Shown: positions 6,524-45,291, numbered from the stretch's first letter. The stretch is 64,000 nt of DNA from Ascoidea asiatica JCM 7603 (GCA_001600695.1 BCKQ01000006.1:262600-326599), one strand, 5' to 3'. The notes: generated by a model from the sequence alone, not told the origin. A program made the numbers and translations.

Positions 6524-9500
6524 TCATAGACTTCTATTTCTACCATGCATTTTTTTTTGCATTCTATACATAAATAATCTTATTATACTCTTTGAAATAC
6601 TTTTTTCTCCAAATAATAATAAATCTAATGTTAATCCTAAACATACAATCAATGCAATTACCAATGAACTGAAAAAAATAATATAAAATCTATAATATTC
6701 ACTAACAATATTGAATGCAAACGTATGTGGTAAATATGTATCACCAAAATCATCAAAACTTTGATCTGAATAAATTTGATTTTTATTACCATAATAAAAT
6801 GTAATTAAATATTGAAATGATAATTGTTTGAATAATTTAAATATTTCAGTTTTTTTAATTCTTGAAATTTGATATATTGGATATGCTAGAAATATTATTA
6901 ATAAAGTATATGATGTTAATCCATAAAATGTTTCAGATTTTCTAATATTCATTTTTCTTTTATCAAGTTCACTTTTCTTTTCTTGATAATTTGAATAAAT
7001 TAATGTTGAATTTAAATATAATATTATAAGTAATATAAATACTATTACAATTAATGCAATTGCTAATCCAAGTTCAACATTTGATAATTTTTGAATTTTA
7101 TTTGTAATATTAATAATATAAGCAATAAAAAAATAAATTGAAAATAGAATTGCATTTTTGAAAAAAATATTTAAATCATAATTTTTTTTAACAATCAATT
7201 CTCTAAAATCAAAATCATCATCATCTTCATCGATTTCTGTAATTGCTTTTCTTGGATGTTCAAGACATGATTTTTTATTTATATAATTTTGAATAGATGC
7301 AAATAAAAATGATTGAAAAATAAATTTCAAAAATAATAAACCAATTACTGTCCACCCAAATTTAAGTATATCTCTTCTAACATTTTTATGAACATCTTTT
7401 TGCTTATAATCAAATAAGAAATAACAGAAATACATTTGTCCATATTGGCACATTGTTAAAATGATTTGAATAAATGTTAGAAGAATTGATAATATTTTAA
7501 AATGTGTTATGAAAGTATCTTGATTATCATAAATATTTGAACTTGATTTCTTTTTTGAATATAAAATTTTATTAGCTAAATTTTTAAAAAAATTTTCATT
7601 TAAACATAGATATAAAAGTACAATTATTACAATTGAATAAACTTCACCGAATATTAATGTTGAAAAATTTGAAATTAATGTTCTTTTTGGAAATTGTAAG
7701 AATGTTTTTAGATGTTTATCAAAACTTATTAAAAATTCATATGGTATATTATCACCCATAATTGATGTGAAGTTTTTTTGATTATTATAAAAAATTGATT
7801 CGATTATAATAAATGCAATACTTAAAATAATTGAAGAAATAATAAAAATGAAATTGAAAGACTTAATTTTATTTGCTAATTTATAAATTTCTGGATTTGA
7901 TTGTTGTGAATAATCTTTATTAATTGAATTTGAATTTGAATTATCTTTTTTATTAACTAGTAATTCATTTGTATCATTATGATTGAAAATTTGATTTGAA
8001 GGACTTGGTTCTCTATTAGCAGTATTTAAAATTGAATTATCATCATCATCTTCAGGTAAAAATCTTAAGGATCTTTGACGTGAATATTCTAAATCTCTTA
8101 AAGAATCGTTTGGATTCAAAGAATTCAAATCTGGATTTGGAATACTTTTTTTAGTAAATTCATTTAATTCAAACGAATTTTGATTCATTTGATTATTTTT
8201 TTTCGCTAAACCTCTTGAAGAAAAAGAATTATTTTTTTTTGGAGTAAACTTAAAAAATCTTGTATAAGATTTTGAAAAAATATCTTTTAAACCATTATTA
8301 AAATTCATTATAACTTTTAAAGACATAATAATATTTAAAATTAATAAAAGAAAATAAAATAAGAAATAAACTTTCATAATAAAGAATTTAATTGGATATT
8401 GATGAATTGATCTTAATTTAAAAATAATCAAAATCTGACTAAAATTAAAGAAAATATAAAATGAATTAAATAAAACACCAGTAATAAATAAACCATAAAA
8501 TTTTTCAAAACTTGCAAAAAAATCTTGTAAAATTAAATAAAATGGAGTTAAGAATATTAAAAATATATGAAAATTTGAAGAAGCAGTTGATGAAATCATA
8601 TCAACAAATAACAAATTGAAAACCATTGAAGTAAAACAACTTAAAGTTAAAGAAGCTCTATGAATTTGAAAATTATATAAGATTTTTTTTTTTGAAAAAG
8701 ATGAATTACCTAAATCATCATAAGATTCATTAACTATGGCCTTTTTAGCATAAAACCAAAAGAAGATTAATTGAACTAAAGCAGTTAAACCAGAAAAGGC
8801 AATTAATAAATATGAGAATACTTTAAATAAATGATCATAATAACTAGTATTTATAGAGTCATTCCAAATTTGAGTTGTATTTGAAATTGAAAATGAAGTT
8901 GCAGTACCATTATATAAAAAAGCAGAGAAAATTAAAACTAAAATTAAATAAATTAATAAAAATATAACTTGGATCATATTTTTAGAATGAATTGACAAAA
9001 AAGTTACAATAATTTGAAAAATTTTTGCAAACATTAAAATTATTGTTGGTAAAAAAATATCAATTGGAGTTGAAATATCTAAAGACATTGAAGTATATTG
9101 TTCAGGATTTGTATTTTTTAAAAAATTTGCAGTTGCATAATATGGTATAAATAAATATTTTGAAGCAGAAAAAGTTGTATCTAAAGTTACAGATCTATAA
9201 TTCCTTGAAATTAAAACAATTTTATCTAACATTACACATTGAAAAGGAATTGATAAAATTACAGAAATTACAGAATTTAAGAAAAAAATTAATAAAATTT
9301 TATTTGATTTTAAACCTTCAAAATATGAAAATTTATTTCTTTTATTATTATTTTTATTTGAATTTAAATTTGATTTTGAATTTTGTTTGATTAAAGTTTC
9401 CTTTGTTAATTTTGTATCAGTAGTTGGAGTTAATGGAATATTTTTTTTATCATTTGATAAATAATCATTGGAATTAATTAATTTTCTTGAATGTAAATCA

Positions 9501-9829
9501 GTTTTTGTAAAAATTTCATCATCTGGACTATTAATATTATTATTATGATTATTTGGATTGATAAATCCATCATTTTGTTGATTTAAAGGATTTTGAAGTT
9601 TTCTAATATCTAAATCAGATTCAAAAATAGCATCAAAATCATCATTATCAGATTTATTCAAATCATTATTTGAAAAATCTTTTAAATCTTTTAATTCATC
9701 ATTTTTCTCATCATTTTCAATATTATTTCCTTTTTCAATATCATTTTGTTTCAGGAATGGAGTATTTATTGATAAATCTGGTGATTTGAAGAATCTTTCT
9801 TCATCATCCTCAGCTCCTTTTAAACTCAT
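6524..9829 (-). CDS. Polytopic membrane protein with two tandem UPF0658-like (fungal Golgi membrane protein) domains
   Basis: Two blocks of ~7 hydrophobic segments separated by a polar linker. First block has SKNMIQVI and MNFNNGLK; second has IESIF, QYGQM, YFFIAY and LAYPIYQISRI. Confidence 0.6.
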   Translation of the reverse strand: MSLKGAEDDEERFFKSPDLSINTPFLKQNDIEKGNNIENDEKNDELKDLKDFSNNDLNKSDNDDFDAIFESDLDIRKLQNPLNQQNDGFINPNNHNNNINSPDDEIFTKTDLHSRKLINSNDYLSNDKKNIPLTPTTDTKLTKETLIKQNSKSNLNSNKNNNKRNKFSYFEGLKSNKILLIFFLNSVISVILSIPFQCVMLDKIVLISRNYRSVTLDTTFSASKYLFIPYYATANFLKNTNPEQYTSMSLDISTPIDIFLPTIILMFAKIFQIIVTFLSIHSKNMIQVIFLLIYLILVLIFSAFLYNGTATSFSISNTTQIWNDSINTSYYDHLFKVFSYLLIAFSGLTALVQLIFFWFYAKKAIVNESYDDLGNSSFSKKKILYNFQIHRASLTLSCFTSMVFNLLFVDMISSTASSNFHIFLIFLTPFYLILQDFFASFEKFYGLFITGVLFNSFYIFFNFSQILIIFKLRSIHQYPIKFFIMKVYFLFYFLLLILNIIMSLKVIMNFNNGLKDIFSKSYTRFFKFTPKKNNSFSSRGLAKKNNQMNQNSFELNEFTKKSIPNPDLNSLNPNDSLRDLEYSRQRSLRFLPEDDDDNSILNTANREPSPSNQIFNHNDTNELLVNKKDNSNSNSINKDYSQQSNPEIYKLANKIKSFNFIFIISSIILSIAFIIIESIFYNNQKNFTSIMGDNIPYEFLISFDKHLKTFLQFPKRTLISNFSTLIFGEVYSIVIIVLLYLCLNENFFKNLANKILYSKKKSSSNIYDNQDTFITHFKILSILLTFIQIILTMCQYGQMYFCYFLFDYKQKDVHKNVRRDILKFGWTVIGLLFLKFIFQSFLFASIQNYINKKSCLEHPRKAITEIDEDDDDFDFRELIVKKNYDLNIFFKNAILFSIYFFIAYIINITNKIQKLSNVELGLAIALIVIVFILLIILYLNSTLIYSNYQEKKSELDKRKMNIRKSETFYGLTSYTLLIIFLAYPIYQISRIKKTEIFKLFKQLSFQYLITFYYGNKNQIYSDQSFDDFGDTYLPHTFAFNIVSEYYRFYIIFFSSLVIALIVCLGLTLDLLLFGEKSISKSIIRLFMYRMQKKMHGRNRSL

Positions 9830-35846: not shown

Positions 35847-38800
35847 TCATGACATATTTTTAAAACTTTTAACATATTGAAGTCTTAAATTATTATATAA
35901 TATAATAATATTAGAAAACACAAGTAAAACAATTGCTAAATTTGGGGTAATTTTAACATTTAGATTATTTACAAACCTCATAGTTCTATCTATATAATAA
36001 TAACCATAATAATCTTTAAACATATCACTTACAGAAGAAATTGGATTAATAATTATTAATCCAACTAAAAATTTAGATACTAAAACTAACAAATAATTAT
36101 TTTTAAAAGTTGAAATGATTAATTTGGAAAGTTCTATTAAAAAAATTAAGTTTCTCAAATGTTTATCAATTATAATCAAGTTACAATTTTTATTATAAAT
36201 TTGTTTATAATTAGAAACTAATGAAACATTAATATCTCCTAAAGTTGAATATAATGTTGGATCAACTTCATTATTTATATTTTCATTGATGATTAAAATA
36301 TTATTATTATCTCTATCTTTATTTGCAAAGAATTTATTATCTTTAATTGAATTCGGCAATAATAATTTTTGTTTTAAAATTTTAATTTTTTCAAATTTTT
36401 CATGAGGAAATAAATTTTTCCAAATTAAATTTTCATTAACTTTGAAATTTTTCAAAATTTTGAAATAAATATCATCAGAGTTTTGTTTTTTTTCACCTGA
36501 GTCCAAATCTGAATTACTTGAATTACTTGCTAGACTTGTAGAACTATTATTAGAATTATGCTTATTATAATCCTCATTTTTCTTGGTTTTGATTTTATCA
36601 TACATAAAACCAACATCATAATTATTATCTTCTTTATTAAGATAATTCATCATTTTAGTGAAATCTTGTTTGACATCAAAATTAACTAAAGAAAAAATTC
36701 CAGATAATTCATTATTTATAACAATGTAAATTAAAGAATCTAATTTAATTTTTTCTCTAATATTATTTGGATTATTGATATTATTTGATAATTTTAAATT
36801 TAAGTTATAATTATTTATAAATTTAACAAATTCTTCATTTAAATTCAATTCTTTAATAAATTTTTTATCAAATAAATTAATATTACCAATTTTAACATCA
36901 AATCTAATATTATCTAGATCTATAGTTGCAAATATTCCCTTTCCAATAACATCTTCAAAATATATACATTTTGCTTTATTATTTTTATTATATTTTTGTA
37001 TAAGTTTACCAATTTTATTAAAATATTCTTCATTATCATCATTAATATTATTTAAATTACTATATGAATTATTATTTGAAATATTTTTTAAAATTGCATT
37101 TGAAATTGGTTTATCAATTAAAGATTCACTTGCAATTATTATTTTCCACCAAGTTTCAGAAGACTTTTCCCAAATATTAAATAATTTAAAAATCTTTACA
37201 TTATTATTTTGATAATTATAAATATTTAAAACATTTAAATTATTAAAGATTAAGATTTTAATTTTTTTAATATCTTCAAAAATTTTTAAGTTAAATTTTT
37301 TGATATAAATACCATTAACAATAGAAGCATGTAAAGAAACAATTAATAACACAGGTTCAATTAATAATAATGAAGTTGGAGAGAAAATAATTAATAAAGT
37401 TATAATTTTGTCAATTTTGAAATTTAATAAATTGTTTTTATTTAAATTTAAACTATCATCTAAGAATATATTATTATAAGTTTTGAAATATAAAATATAA
37501 ACTAAGAATGTAAAAATTAATAAAATTAGAATTGCAATGATTAATCTTTGAAAATATAAAATATCATGATAATTTTTTTGATAAATGTGTTTATTATTGA
37601 TTGAATTATTCAATTTATTTAAGTTCAAAGAAGAACTTGAGTTTGTTTTTCTTAAATTGAAGAAGTTTAAGTAGTTTTTAATATTTGAATTTAAAATATT
37701 AATCAGATTTTCTTCATTACTACTTGTATTTGAATTTGCATTTTCTTTGTTATTGACTTTGTCTTTATTTAAAATACTTGAAATATTTGTTATACTATCT
37801 TGAGATCTATGAATAATAGTATTAAAAGAATTATTTGTATTTATTGGACTTGATGGACTTGTGATTGGAGTTTCATTGTTGTTTGAAGTATTTGTATTTA
37901 AATTATTTAAGTTATTGGTATTGATATTTTTTTTATAATAATATTTTAAGAAATTATTTAATATTTTTTTATTTGAATTTTGAATTAAATAATTCTTAGC
38001 AAATATTATATTTAAATTTAAATTAACTAGATTTAAGATTTTTAAATTTGAAAAAATTTTAAAATTGAAAATTTGATAAAATACAAAAAAAATTAATAGA
38101 TTATTAATTAAAATTAAATAAAAGTTTATTGAAAAAAAAGATCTGAAGAATTTATTGAATGTGTGATTGAGATTTTTATTGAAATATTTGTTATTGATAT
38201 TTCCAAGGATGGAATTACTCGAACTTAAGTTATTATAATTGAAATTATAAATGTTAGTAGTAGGAGTAGTTGCAGTTCGATTATTATTAGAGTGATTGAA
38301 GAATAGATTATAATAGATAAAGAAACCTAGGATGTATTGTTGAAAGAAAGTTAAATCAATTGAGATATATAAATAAAATTTGAAATAAGTTGAAATTGAA
38401 GCTTTATAATAATAATTAGATAAAATGATTGAGATATAAATTAAAATAGATATGAAAATGGATAAATAAAATAAAAATGAATAATTTATTTCATTATCAA
38501 AATCAAATTCATTATTAATTGAGTTATAATTACTGAATGTATTATTATATGAATTATTTATTAAATTTGAATTTGAATTAGATTGAATTGTATTTAAGAT
38601 TGAATGAATTTTTTTTGAATTTATTAAATTTTTATTATATATTATTATTAAATTTTTTAAATTTTTGGATAATGATAATTCTTTAATTGAAATTGAAGAG
38701 AATTTTAAAAATTCAGATTGAATTAAATTTATTAGATCATCATTTATAAGATTTGAATTTAAGATTTTTATAGATTCAATGATATAATCATTTGATAAAT

Positions 38801-39005
38801 CTGAATTTGAAGAATTTAAAGAAGGTGATAATATTTGAGTATTTTGTAAATCGAATAATATTGATTTTGAAGAAAGTGGAAATTGAGATGGATTTTGAGA
38901 TTGGGAAATGGATTGAGATTGAGATTGAGAATTGGATGAGAATATATTTTTTTGTATTGGTAGTAATCTTGTTATTGACAAATAACCTAATAAACAAAAT
39001 GCCAT
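35847..39005 (-). CDS. Degenerate P1B-type (Ccc2/ATP7-like) heavy-metal ATPase homologue lacking catalytic motifs
   Basis: Collinear remnants of Ccc2-type motifs: FSPTSLLLIEP (ACPCALGLAxP), NGIYIK, LIFNNLNVL (VFDKTGTL), SESLIDKPISNAI (ESxSxHPxxxAI), GKGI, FPHEKFEKIKILK, INENINN (GDGIND), and two C-terminal TM helices ending NNLRL. Confidence 0.8.
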   Translation of the reverse strand: MAFCLLGYLSITRLLPIQKNIFSSNSQSQSQSISQSQNPSQFPLSSKSILFDLQNTQILSPSLNSSNSDLSNDYIIESIKILNSNLINDDLINLIQSEFLKFSSISIKELSLSKNLKNLIIIYNKNLINSKKIHSILNTIQSNSNSNLINNSYNNTFSNYNSINNEFDFDNEINYSFLFYLSIFISILIYISIILSNYYYKASISTYFKFYLYISIDLTFFQQYILGFFIYYNLFFNHSNNNRTATTPTTNIYNFNYNNLSSSNSILGNINNKYFNKNLNHTFNKFFRSFFSINFYLILINNLLIFFVFYQIFNFKIFSNLKILNLVNLNLNIIFAKNYLIQNSNKKILNNFLKYYYKKNINTNNLNNLNTNTSNNNETPITSPSSPINTNNSFNTIIHRSQDSITNISSILNKDKVNNKENANSNTSSNEENLINILNSNIKNYLNFFNLRKTNSSSSLNLNKLNNSINNKHIYQKNYHDILYFQRLIIAILILLIFTFLVYILYFKTYNNIFLDDSLNLNKNNLLNFKIDKIITLLIIFSPTSLLLIEPVLLIVSLHASIVNGIYIKKFNLKIFEDIKKIKILIFNNLNVLNIYNYQNNNVKIFKLFNIWEKSSETWWKIIIASESLIDKPISNAILKNISNNNSYSNLNNINDDNEEYFNKIGKLIQKYNKNNKAKCIYFEDVIGKGIFATIDLDNIRFDVKIGNINLFDKKFIKELNLNEEFVKFINNYNLNLKLSNNINNPNNIREKIKLDSLIYIVINNELSGIFSLVNFDVKQDFTKMMNYLNKEDNNYDVGFMYDKIKTKKNEDYNKHNSNNSSTSLASNSSNSDLDSGEKKQNSDDIYFKILKNFKVNENLIWKNLFPHEKFEKIKILKQKLLLPNSIKDNKFFANKDRDNNNILIINENINNEVDPTLYSTLGDINVSLVSNYKQIYNKNCNLIIIDKHLRNLIFLIELSKLIISTFKNNYLLVLVSKFLVGLIIINPISSVSDMFKDYYGYYYIDRTMRFVNNLNVKITPNLAIVLLVFSNIIILYNNLRLQYVKSFKNMS

Positions 39006-40653: not shown

Positions 40654-43600
40654 ATGGATTTCAATGACTCAACAACAATAGCCGCTGATCCAACTTCTTC
40701 ATTTTCTGATAATACTACAATTAAAGTTAATTCAAGTGATAATAATGATATCAACATTGACAATAACAATGATAATAATAATGATAATAATATTGATACA
40801 AATAATGATTCAAATAATATAAATAATATAAATAATATAAATAATATAAATAATATAAATAATATAAACAATGGAAATGGTATAGATAATAAAGCAAATA
40901 ATCCAGGAATTACTAAAAATAATAGAAACAATAATAATAATAATAATGATAATATTCCAATAGCGTCAAATAATGATCGTAATACAAATCCTTTAATTCC
41001 ATTAAATTTATCAAAATTCTCAAATTTACAAAATAATCTATCAAATAATTTATCAAATAGTTTATCAAACTTATCTAACTTATCTAATTTATCAAATTTA
41101 CCAAATTTATCAAATATAAATATTTCAAATATTAATAATTTACCTCAAAAAAGAAGAAGAGTAACAAGAGCTTGTGATGAATGTAGAAAAAAAAAAGTAA
41201 AATGTGATGGTCAACAACCTTGTATTCATTGTACTGTTTATAATTATAATTGTACTTATATACAACCTTCAAATAGAAAAAAATCAAAATTTACAAATAA
41301 TAATAATAATAGTAATAATAATAGTAATAATAATAATAATAATAATAGTAATAATAACAACATCATCAATAATAACAATAATGAATTAGATTCTCAAAAA
41401 AATTTAGATAAATTATTATTATCTGAAAATAATAATATTATTACCGCTAATAAAAATGAAAATAATAATGATCAATTTGATAAAGAATCTGTGGATAAAA
41501 TTAATTTAAAATTTAATATATTAAAAAAAATTATTGATTTTATATTACCAGATTTATTCAATAATAACAATAATGAAAAAAAAAATGAGAATGAAATGGA
41601 ATCTCAAAATGATAATAATAATAAAAATGAATCAAAAGTGGAGATTGAAAATGAGAATATAAATAATAATAATAATAATAGTAATGAATCAAAATGTAAA
41701 TCAAAAAGTAAATCTAATAAGAAAGATAATAATAATACAGATATTGATAATGATAAAATCAGTAATAAAGATAATGATAAAGATATAGACAATAAAAAAC
41801 ATAAAGATAATGATATTGATAATCAAATTTTACTTTTTGATTTTGATAAATTCAAATTAATTTATAATAACTTATTATTAAATTATAATAATCAAAATAA
41901 TAATTCTAGTTTAAATCCATTGATTGTATCTTCAACTCCAATGAATAAATCAAAATCTCAATCAAATGCAATCTCTTTACCAAATCAAAATTTTATCAAA
42001 ACTGAAAATGATTCATCAAATTTAAATATTAACTTAAATTCAAACTCAAATTCAAACTCAAACTCAAACTCAGACTTAATTAAAAATTTCTTATCTCAAT
42101 TAGTTATCAATTATAATAACAACAATAATAATAATATCAATAATCCATTAGTTATAAAATCTGCTGTTCCAAATTTAAAATTATCTCATCCAATTAGTAT
42201 ATTATCTAATTCTTCTACTTTAAATTTCGATTCAATTAATAATCAAAATAATAATATTCAAACTTTAAATAATTTAAATTTACGTAATAATAATTCAATT
42301 AATAATTTAAATACTATAAATACTATTCAATCTATAAAATCAACTCAAATGAATCAATCTCAATCTTTACCAATTAATCAACAACAAAATTTATCTTCTA
42401 CAAATAATCAAAATCAATTATCTAATAATAATCAACTTAATAATCAATTTAATATTAATAATATCGATAATAATAACAACAATAATAATAATATCAATAA
42501 TAGGAATACTAATATCAATAATAATAATTCCCAGTTAAACTATTTAAATAATAATAGTAATATTAATAACAATAATCATAACATCAATTCTACAAATAAT
42601 GAGGAACAAAAACAAATTAAAATTACTTTACCTCCATTAGAATCAACTTTATTATTAGTAAATAAAGCTTGTGATAGTTCTTGTTTATTTAAATATTATA
42701 ATAGAAAAAATTTGTTAAAAGTTATTCAAGAACTTTATAATGAAAATAATAATCAATTAATTAATTCAAATCTAAATTTATATGAAAATTTATCAAAAAA
42801 AGAAAAAGAATTAAAATTAAATAGAAATAATAAATTATCTGCTTTAATTTATTCATTTTTATCTGTTGGTGCTTTATTACAAAATGATAAAAATTGTTAT
42901 AATTATTATAATGCTTCATATACTTTATTATCAAGACAAAACATTATTGAAACTAATGATATTACAAATTTAATAACTTTATTTACTTTAATTATTTTTT
43001 TACAATGTACTGCAAGATTATCAACTTGTTATTCATATATTGGAATTGCTTTAAGATCTGCTTTAAGAATTGGTTTACATAGAAAAATAAATTCAGTAAT
43101 TTCTCCAATTGAAGCTGAAAATAGGAAAAGATTATTTTGGTCAATTTACAAAATGGATGTTTATATGAATACAATGTTAGGTTTACCAAGTATATCAAAT
43201 GATGATTTAGATCAAGATTTACCTTGTGAATTAGATGATCAAAATATTACTACTTTTCATTATCTTTTTCAAAATCAAAAAAATAATTTATCTTCAATTG
43301 CAATCTCAAATCAACATACAAAATTAGTTATCATTTTAAATCATATTGTTAAAAATTTATATCCTGTTAAAACTTCAAAATTAGGTACTTCATCTCCAAT
43401 TGCTCCTTCTCCTAATGAATCGTCAGCTTTATCAACTATTGCTTCCCCATCCAATCTTAATTTTGGCCATAATTTACAACCACAGCAACAACCTGTTCAA
43501 AATAATACTACTGATAGTACTCCTGGAACAATAAGTAATCAATCAAGTCCAAGTGTTAATAGTAATAACTTTAATCATTTGAATAATTTAGGTAATTCCG

Positions 43601-45291
43601 AAAATCATGGAGTAATCAATTCAATTTCAAGAAAAATAGAAGCAATGGAAAAAGAATTAAAAGATTGGTTAGATAATTTACCAGTTGAATTAGATCCAGT
43701 AAATAAAAATATCCCCGAAAAATATTATAAACAAAATAGATTACTCTATTTAGCTTTTTTACACATTGAAATTGTATTATATCGTCCTTTTATTCATTTA
43801 ATTTCTCATAAATATCTTTCTATACCGAACGTTAATAGAAAATCCGTCAAAAGAGCTCAATTATGCCTTTCTGCGGCAATTAAAGTAGTTGATCTAGCAG
43901 TTGAAATGTTTGATCAAGGTTTATTGAATGGAGCTTATTGGTTTTCAATTTATCCAATTTTTTATTCAGTTGCTTGTCTAGTTTATTATATTCATGAAAA
44001 TGCAGGAGCTGTTGATTTAAAGACTCAAGAAATTAGAAGCCATGCAGAAAAAGGAAAAGACGTATTAACTAAACTAAGAGATAATTCCGTTGCAGCTTCA
44101 AGAACCTATCATATATTGAATGTAATGTTTGAACAATTGAATAGAAAAACAGCTAGTTATTTCAATGCAACTTATTCAAATGGAGGGAAATCAAAATCAA
44201 AACAATCAACTCCTGTTTATGAAACCGATTTAGAAAATTATGAAAGAGGTCAAGATAGAAGTCGAAATGCTAACATTAATAACAACAATAATAATAATAA
44301 TAGTAACAATAATAGTAATACTAGAGATACCAGTCGTGATCGTATCCCTAGTGGACCTCAATCTTTGTTTGCATCAAGTTCCAACAGTCAATATAATCCT
44401 AGATCCAATATGTCTAGAAATCCATCAGGAAATAATTATTTTTCAAATTCTCCTAATTCAAATTTTTCAAATAATAACATTAACAATAACATTAATTCTA
44501 ACACGTATAATTCACCAGAAGCTACTCTTAATAATAATATTGAATTACAACTGGAGGCTGCACTTGCTGCGCAAAATCGAGATATTCAAAGTCAAAATCA
44601 AATTCAAAATCAGAACCAAAATCAAAATCAAAATCAGAACAAGAATAAAAATCGTAATCAAAGAAATAATCAAAATCAAAATCAAAATCAGTTATCTAGT
44701 AGAAATCAAAAACCTAATAACAATTATAATGATGTAAATCAAACTTATCAAGCTGGAATGCTTGATACTATAGATATGCAAATTTTCGGTAGATATTTAC
44801 CTCCTTATATGATTCAGAATAATAATGTTTCAAAATCAAGTAAAGATTTTTCTAAGCTTGACTTACCTAATGACAATAATCTAACAACAGATCTTTTGAA
44901 ATATCCTTCCACAACAGATTCATTAATAAGTAATCTTAATCCAACTGGAAATAATATGAATAATACCAGTATGAATAATAATAATAATATCAATAATAAT
45001 AATAACAGTAATAGTAATATGAATAACAATGCAAGTGGTACCATGAGCACTAATATGAATAATAATAACAATAATAAGAATAATAATAACAATAGTAATG
45101 AAGATATTGTTCTTTTAGGTAGTATATATCCTACAACTCAAGGGAATTTTTCAAATCCAAATGCATTACTGAATGAAATTGATAATACATTTAATTTGAA
45201 TGCAGATGAATTAAAGGACTTACCTAACTTAGATAGAGTTTGGGGTGATTATGACCCAGAACTTACATTTAATTTTGACAAAATTCCATAA
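40654..45291 (+). CDS. ASG1: Zn(II)2Cys6 transcription factor, Asg1 orthologue
   Basis: [34 protein letters not shown] is near-identical to the Asg1 zinc cluster. A fungal TF middle homology region ([26 protein letters not shown]) and the C-terminal [14 protein letters not shown] follow. Confidence 0.92.
40812..40872. repeat. 9-bp coding tandem repeat (AATAATATA)n encoding (NNI)n in ASG1
   Basis: About 6 copies seen directly. Confidence 0.85.

Follow-up and report, generated by a model that had tools for sequence, protein, structure and literature searches.

The aspartyl-phosphate cycle is the established chemistry of P-type ATPases, and it needs the phospho-acceptor Asp. Among kinases and phosphatases, pseudoenzymes are familiar; among P-type pumps, to our knowledge, few have been described. 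Changes of the Asp from D to N or from D to A inactivate SERCA, ATP7B and even ERMA (PMC13322241, PMC7418023). The P4-ATPase-like domain of Plasmodium GC-beta is a selected scaffold in which most signatures are unidentifiable (PMC6592433); it derives from a P4-ATPase, forms part of a guanylate cyclase fusion and acts together with CDC50. ERMA/TMEM94 has a P-type fold without TGES and GDGVND, and it keeps the Asp (DKQGI) and the actuator (A) domain, with an occluded nucleotide pocket and reported Mg2+ transport (PMC13322241). Nucleotide-binding pseudokinases and trypanosome prozymes offer a functional analogy, a dead paralogue beside a working parent, but they are soluble enzymes.

The gene reported here, which we call the dead copy, is located in a 64,000-nucleotide stretch of the Ascoidea asiatica JCM 7603 genome; this whole stretch is referred to as the window. 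The closest described relatives are the copper pumps Ccc2, ATP7A, ATP7B and CopA, with which the dead copy shares the order of HMA-like domain, membrane region, M3-M4, P, N, P and M5-M6, as well as the pocket Glu, Gly and Asn, and which give its best profile and fold matches. Unlike these P1B-1 Cu(I) pumps, it has no phospho-acceptor Asp, detectable A domain, CPC, YN, MxxSS, TGD, GDGxND or CxxC domains, and its conservation pattern is inverted relative to that of Ccc2. It differs from GC-beta in being P1B-derived and stand-alone and in having lost the A domain, and from ERMA in lacking the Asp and the A domain and in keeping the pocket residues. The folds of pseudokinases and prozymes are unrelated to that of the dead copy, and the likeness to them is one of function. 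No description of a stand-alone, actuator-less P1B pseudo-ATPase, of any pseudoenzyme descended from a heavy-metal pump, or of an Ascoidea copper ATPase, was found in the literature searched, in which few subscription journals were covered.

The dead copy is an uninterrupted ORF of 1052 codons (1052 aa) at 35847-39005 on the minus strand, as the preliminary description of the window had reported, and its parts are listed in Table 1. At its base composition about 1 in 10 codons is expected to be a stop, so that an ORF like this would arise by chance with a probability of around 1e-47; in 1000 base shuffles, the longest stop-free run was 112 codons. A chance ORF is ruled out. The preliminary description had argued that an unselected frame of this length would accumulate stops, and the frame of the orthologue is open too. 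The host genome (20.3 Mb, 71 contigs) contains the dead copy once. Its composition is strongly biased, with 3 Cys and 14 Gly in all 1052 residues and no CxxC.

Table 1. Position of the dead copy and its parts in the A. asiatica window.
Feature	Residues (aa)	Position	Strand	Basis
Whole ORF, catalytically dead P1B-ATPase derivative, single copy	1052 aa	35847..39005	-	Profile matches; A. rubescens orthologue ASCRUDRAFT_78088
HMA-like (ferredoxin-type) domain without CxxC	74-144	38574..38786	-	Position, guided model
N-terminal membrane region, probable MA, MB, M1, M2	172-359	37929..38492	-	Hydropathy; helix assignment inferred from position
Asn-rich length-variable linker replacing actuator (A) domain, no TGE	360-474	37584..37928	-	No A-domain profile match, low pLDDT, many indels
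M3-M4 membrane pair and stalk	475-566	37308..37583	-	Profile 12.2 bits vs shuffle maximum 5.9
SPT at CPC position, both species		37374..37382	-	Alignment with Ccc2
NNLNV at DKTGT position (NNLSI in orthologue); phospho-acceptor Asp replaced by Asn588		37230..37244	-	Alignment with Ccc2
Nucleotide-binding (N) domain, most conserved part	600-774	36684..37208	-	79% identity; profile bits
P domain second half; TGD lost; Ser/Asn-rich insertion; P867, K870 kept	775-967	36105..36683	-	Alignment
NENINN in place of GDGxND, within P domain second half		36270-36287	-	Alignment
M5-M6 membrane pair, least conserved region; YN and Met of MxxSS lost	968-1052	35850..36104	-	Identity, alignment

For motif positions, the dead copy was aligned with 85 yeast Ccc2 proteins. 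In this alignment SPT falls on CPC and NNLNV on DKTGT, exactly at the coordinates first given for them, and the downstream Pro, NG and IK keep their register. HP has become KP (Lys632), TGD is lost and GDGxND is replaced by NENINN in both species; YN of M5 is SK in the dead copy and FT in the A. rubescens orthologue, and the Met of M6 MxxSS is gone. A search for the A domain gave no A-domain profile match in the dead copy, and TGE is absent; the region in its place is Asn-rich and variable in length, with many indels between the species. The substitutions of CPC, DKTGT, HP, GDGxND, YN and MxxSS, the register after SPT and the Asn-rich replacement of the TGE region had all been read correctly in the preliminary description. 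Inside this drifting linker, 13 of the 15 residues at aa 436-450 (37656-37700, minus strand) are identical between the species; this block may be what is left of an actuator, or else a short motif for binding.

Since the phospho-acceptor Asp, a detectable actuator, TGD, GDGxND and all known copper ligands are missing, a P-type cycle is impossible. The aligned positions show that the dead copy is no P-type pump, and ATP hydrolysis through an acyl-phosphate is predicted to be absent. An active pump with a variant metal motif is ruled out, because the Asp is absent.

The losses first listed were found as stated, but the claim that every signature was substituted is an overstatement, because the adenine-pocket Glu, three Gly and Asn, together with several P-domain residues, are kept. 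Residues kept in both species are E627, P633, G688, G690, G707, N708 and G769 in the N domain and P867, K870 and N911 in the P domain, and the acidic E908 stands at the first Asp of GDGxND. K870 is the HAD Lys. Among the elements of a P1B-type N domain (Glu, HP, GxG and GN), five of six pocket residues are kept and the His is replaced by Lys. Residues invariant in Ccc2 are kept at 6 of 8 positions in the N domain, whereas M3-M6 and the P domain keep 17 of 85 (p=0.003), and invariant Gly at 4 of 4 positions, as against 1 of 11 elsewhere (p=0.004); for the dead copies themselves, "invariant" means common to two sequences, the sole ones known. Absence of CxxC from the HMA-like segment was likewise found as described, but it is no special loss, for the membrane-proximal HMA-like segment of canonical Ccc2 has no CxxC in 68 of the 85 proteins. 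Judged against these proteins, the real N-terminal loss is that of the upstream CxxC-bearing metal-binding domains.

Homology with P1B pumps has been examined with profiles, language-model features and structure models. A profile of the 85 Ccc2 proteins scores 56 and 59 bits against the two dead copies and at most -1.2 against 300 locally shuffled copies. NCBIfam TIGR01525 matches the A. rubescens orthologue (E 1.1e-9) and is the only significant family among 18,950, with a score far under the family's 346-bit cut-off. A Pfam search of the dead copy gave no match, a PDB sequence search matched ATP7B weakly (E 0.097), and language-model features pointed to HAD/P-type clusters at 0.97. The best-matching part is the N domain (24.9 and 38.1 bits; shuffle maximum 4.1), and the M3-M4 and M5-M6 profiles also match in A. 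asiatica. The score of the second P segment is marginal, at the right place. That of the HMA-like domain is inside the shuffle range, yet the domain is at the expected place in both species, has a language-model lead of 0.81-0.82 and a guided-model pLDDT of 70-89, and matches the degenerate membrane-proximal domain of Ccc2. Of the eight membrane helices, MA and MB included, that a P1B pump has, six clear hydropathy peaks could be seen, including those at aa 177-195 and 290-308; MA-M2 gave no significant profile match, and this region is strongly diverged, with a polar, Asn-rich last helix and a guided-model pLDDT of 50-80.

AlphaFold run without a deep alignment gave a pLDDT of 30 and no usable fold. 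With Ccc2 rows supplied, the HMA, N, P and M3-M6 parts were modelled confidently, and residues 323-478 stayed below pLDDT 50 despite the intact actuator domains in the guiding rows. CopA and ATP7B are the best matches to the guided model (Foldseek E 9e-14, Z 18.7) in this comparison, which the preliminary description had proposed, but the match is circular because Ccc2 guided the model, which is compatible with a P-type fold and is no independent evidence for it. P-type ancestry is nevertheless upheld by the profile matches, which are independent of the guiding alignment, and on these matches the dead copy is a P1B-ATPase derivative.

Two working P1B pumps have been found elsewhere in the genome, including the canonical CCC2 that the preliminary description had proposed to look for. 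Ccc2 itself (1054 aa; L023:1853-5017, minus strand) is on contig 4 and has CPC, DKTNT, TGES, HP, GDGIND and YN; the second pump (1356 aa) is on contig 3. By hhalign the dead copy is assigned to Ccc2 at 87%, and it has no core match to the second pump. In trees, the dead copies join the Ccc2 proteins of Ascoidea, together with four close relatives of these, with support of 98-100, and the AU test does not reject a grouping with the second pump (p 0.26). The parent was probably CCC2, which is favoured over the second (Crp1-like) pump; because of the very long branch, the atypical composition and the AU result, this falls short of proof.

The canonical Ccc2 carries DKTNT for DKTGT, a form found in 5 of 119 matching database proteins: the Ccc2 of A. 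rubescens and those of four close relatives. DKTNT therefore seems to be characteristic of this lineage, in pumps that are intact in other respects. The genome further contains three Pma1-like proton ATPases (L001, L002, L004) and two Pmc1-like calcium ATPases (L007, L008), labelled from their motifs, and P-type duplications seem to be common in the Ascoidea lineage. Two HAD-hydrolase matches, C6:24908-25480 and C19:270443-271015, have the same score and frame length (236 aa) and represent either a recent duplication or an assembly duplicate; a third, C4:293250-293810, has three internal stops and is either a pseudogene or interrupted by an intron.

The sole relative found for the dead copy is A. 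rubescens ASCRUDRAFT_78088, an intact protein of 1091 aa annotated as uncharacterized. No further relatives were found by a word-indexed search, by scanning 1.84 billion representatives in full with HMMER and a profile of the two sequences, or by a metagenome scan with the orthologue; since the sensitivity of these searches, the HMMER scan included, fell short of the canonical P1B pumps, other yeasts may have a homologue just as diverged that escaped detection. The known range is therefore two Ascoidea species, neither of them a model organism. Close synteny around the dead copy is absent between the two. The sole trace is a window gene at 6524-9829 (minus strand) with its orthologue at L017:19200-22301 (minus strand), neither Pfam-annotated; the distance to the dead copy is 26 kb in A. 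asiatica and 6 kb in A. rubescens. In A. asiatica, a Zn2Cys6 transcription factor gene (40654-45291, plus strand) is divergent from the dead copy across 1.6 kb; in A. rubescens this linkage is lost, and a longin SNARE gene is present upstream.

Between the two species, the dead copies are 54% identical overall, with about 34 in-frame gaps and a frame open in both. Fourfold-degenerate sites are 35% identical, as against 32% expected by chance at saturation. In the core, dN/dS is about 0.1 (about 0.11 in the N domain and about 0.1 in the first P segment), values that are approximate because dS is near saturation. The intact orthologue and this purifying selection support the earlier proposal of a P-type pseudoenzyme kept by selection, in which catalytic residues have been lost and constraint has been retained. 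An assembly artefact is ruled out by the independent orthologue, a recent pseudogene by the open frames and the core dN/dS, and horizontal transfer between the two species by the near-saturated synonymous sites. The stem branch leading to the dead copies measures 2.7 changes per site under LG+G and 10 under a mixture model, and is several times the length of the branches that follow the species split; the two species differ by 0.4-0.5, which is similar to the divergence of their Ccc2 pair. These branch lengths would fit a long burst of change followed again by strong constraint.

The working Ccc2 pair from A. asiatica and A. rubescens has been used as an internal control for the distribution of this constraint. 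For the N domain, identity between the species is 79% in the dead copy but 44% in Ccc2 (Fisher p=3e-9), and the difference persists with Asn sites removed (98/125 vs 46/106). The opposite is found for M5-M6 (31% in the dead copy vs 73% in Ccc2), MA-M2 (43% vs 64%), M3-M4 (51% vs 70%) and the second P segment (56% vs 70%), and the first P segment of the dead copy is 73% identical. While the membrane and P segments are the most conserved parts of Ccc2 (64-77%) and its N domain is among the least, the order is reversed in the dead copy, and this reversal is a new result of the present analysis. The regional identities show that selection is concentrated most strongly on the N domain, and also on the P-domain core and the M4 stalk, with membrane helices that drift. 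The selected part is thus one that the preliminary description had entered as a loss; among the non-pumping roles suggested there, that of a Ccc2 partner has found no specific support. Because the N domain is the most conserved part, the dead copy is probably a membrane-anchored regulator or nucleotide sensor.

We consider the chances about even that its helices serve as a membrane anchor for an N/P module that binds ATP or ADP without turnover, the state of which controls a putative partner. By this proposal, a P1B copper pump gene, in all likelihood CCC2, was duplicated, and the duplicate would have changed heavily and then been selected in a new role. The product would be integral to the membrane, with helices that mainly anchor it, and would probably reside in the secretory pathway as its parent does. 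In the N/P headpiece the adenine pocket, which is retained, would take up ATP or ADP with no phosphoenzyme formed. Whether nucleotide is bound would determine how the headpiece is shaped and hence its binding to the putative partner protein, as in nucleotide-binding pseudokinases. The P1B nucleotide pocket is lined by residues matching Glu627, Gly688, Gly690 and Gly707 of the dead copy (PMC5089723), beside which Asn708 is kept too. The conserved N-domain His is lost, which counts against the proposal; however, a CopA N/P fragment with a His-to-Gln change has been crystallised with AMPPCP (PDB 3a1e), so that loss of the His need not abolish nucleotide binding. As further counterpoints, the glycines may be kept for folding instead of ATP, and isolated intact P1B N domains can bind ATP poorly (PMC5089723). 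The complete reading, a stand-alone P1B pseudo-ATPase that has shed its actuator and transport site and whose N/P headpiece acts as a membrane-anchored ATP/ADP sensor controlling another protein, is put forward tentatively and with some doubt.

In the main rival reading, the same headpiece would be a nucleotide-independent scaffold or subunit with an N/P surface on which a protein docks and a pocket that is kept for the fold only. The docked protein might be the real Ccc2, whose trafficking or activity the dead paralogue would then regulate. Many aromatic and charged residues of the headpiece are conserved specifically in the dead copy, as docking would predict. ATP7B dimerises, and inactive variants alter the trafficking of active copies (PMC7418023); catalytically dead trypanosome paralogues are reported to regulate their parents (PMC3663545, PMC5201418). 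We nevertheless regard a scaffold as possible but rather unlikely, since the pocket residues are retained far above the background of other invariant residues. Nothing points specifically to Ccc2 as the docked protein: the dead copy is unlinked to CCC2, and no copper, iron or zinc promoter motif, including the Mac1-type, is common to both dead-copy upstream regions, a weak test because no such motif is present upstream of the real pumps either.

A sensor with anchoring helices is also to be weighed against a non-canonical transporter or passive conduit for ions or lipids, perhaps nucleotide-gated, as debated for ERMA/TMEM94. Several polar membrane residues are common to both species (SPT, E550, H559 and several Asn at about 326-330), and ERMA is reported to move Mg2+ without TGES and GDGVND (PMC13322241). 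However, ERMA has the Asp, and its D427N change abolishes uptake (PMC13322241), while the dead copy has Asn; its membrane helices are moreover the least conserved part, the opposite of a working transporter, which makes a conduit improbable. More doubtful still is a residual or novel enzyme hydrolysing ATP or a phosphoester without aspartyl-phosphate via K870, E908 and N911. In its favour, both species retain the HAD Lys and, where GDGxND has its first Asp, an acidic residue. Against it, the dead copy has lost the nucleophile Asp, the Thr of both DKTGT and TGD and the later Asp of GDGxND, and its P domain is, in the second half, conserved less well than that of Ccc2. A decaying pseudogene or neutral remnant, which the absence of a Pfam match, the two-species range and the very biased composition might suggest, is barely credible, because the frame has stayed open in both species through near-saturated synonymous change and about 34 in-frame gaps, the core dN/dS is low and the ORF is so improbable by chance.

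Pumping-independent roles are hard to part from transport in ATP7A/B or Ccc2, and the dead copy is a natural separation of the two. Since the selection pattern singles out one small soluble domain, this domain can be purified and tested, and the dead copy would show which N-domain functions survive without an actuator. If the sensor reading is true, an ion-pump chassis would have been turned into a signalling protein.
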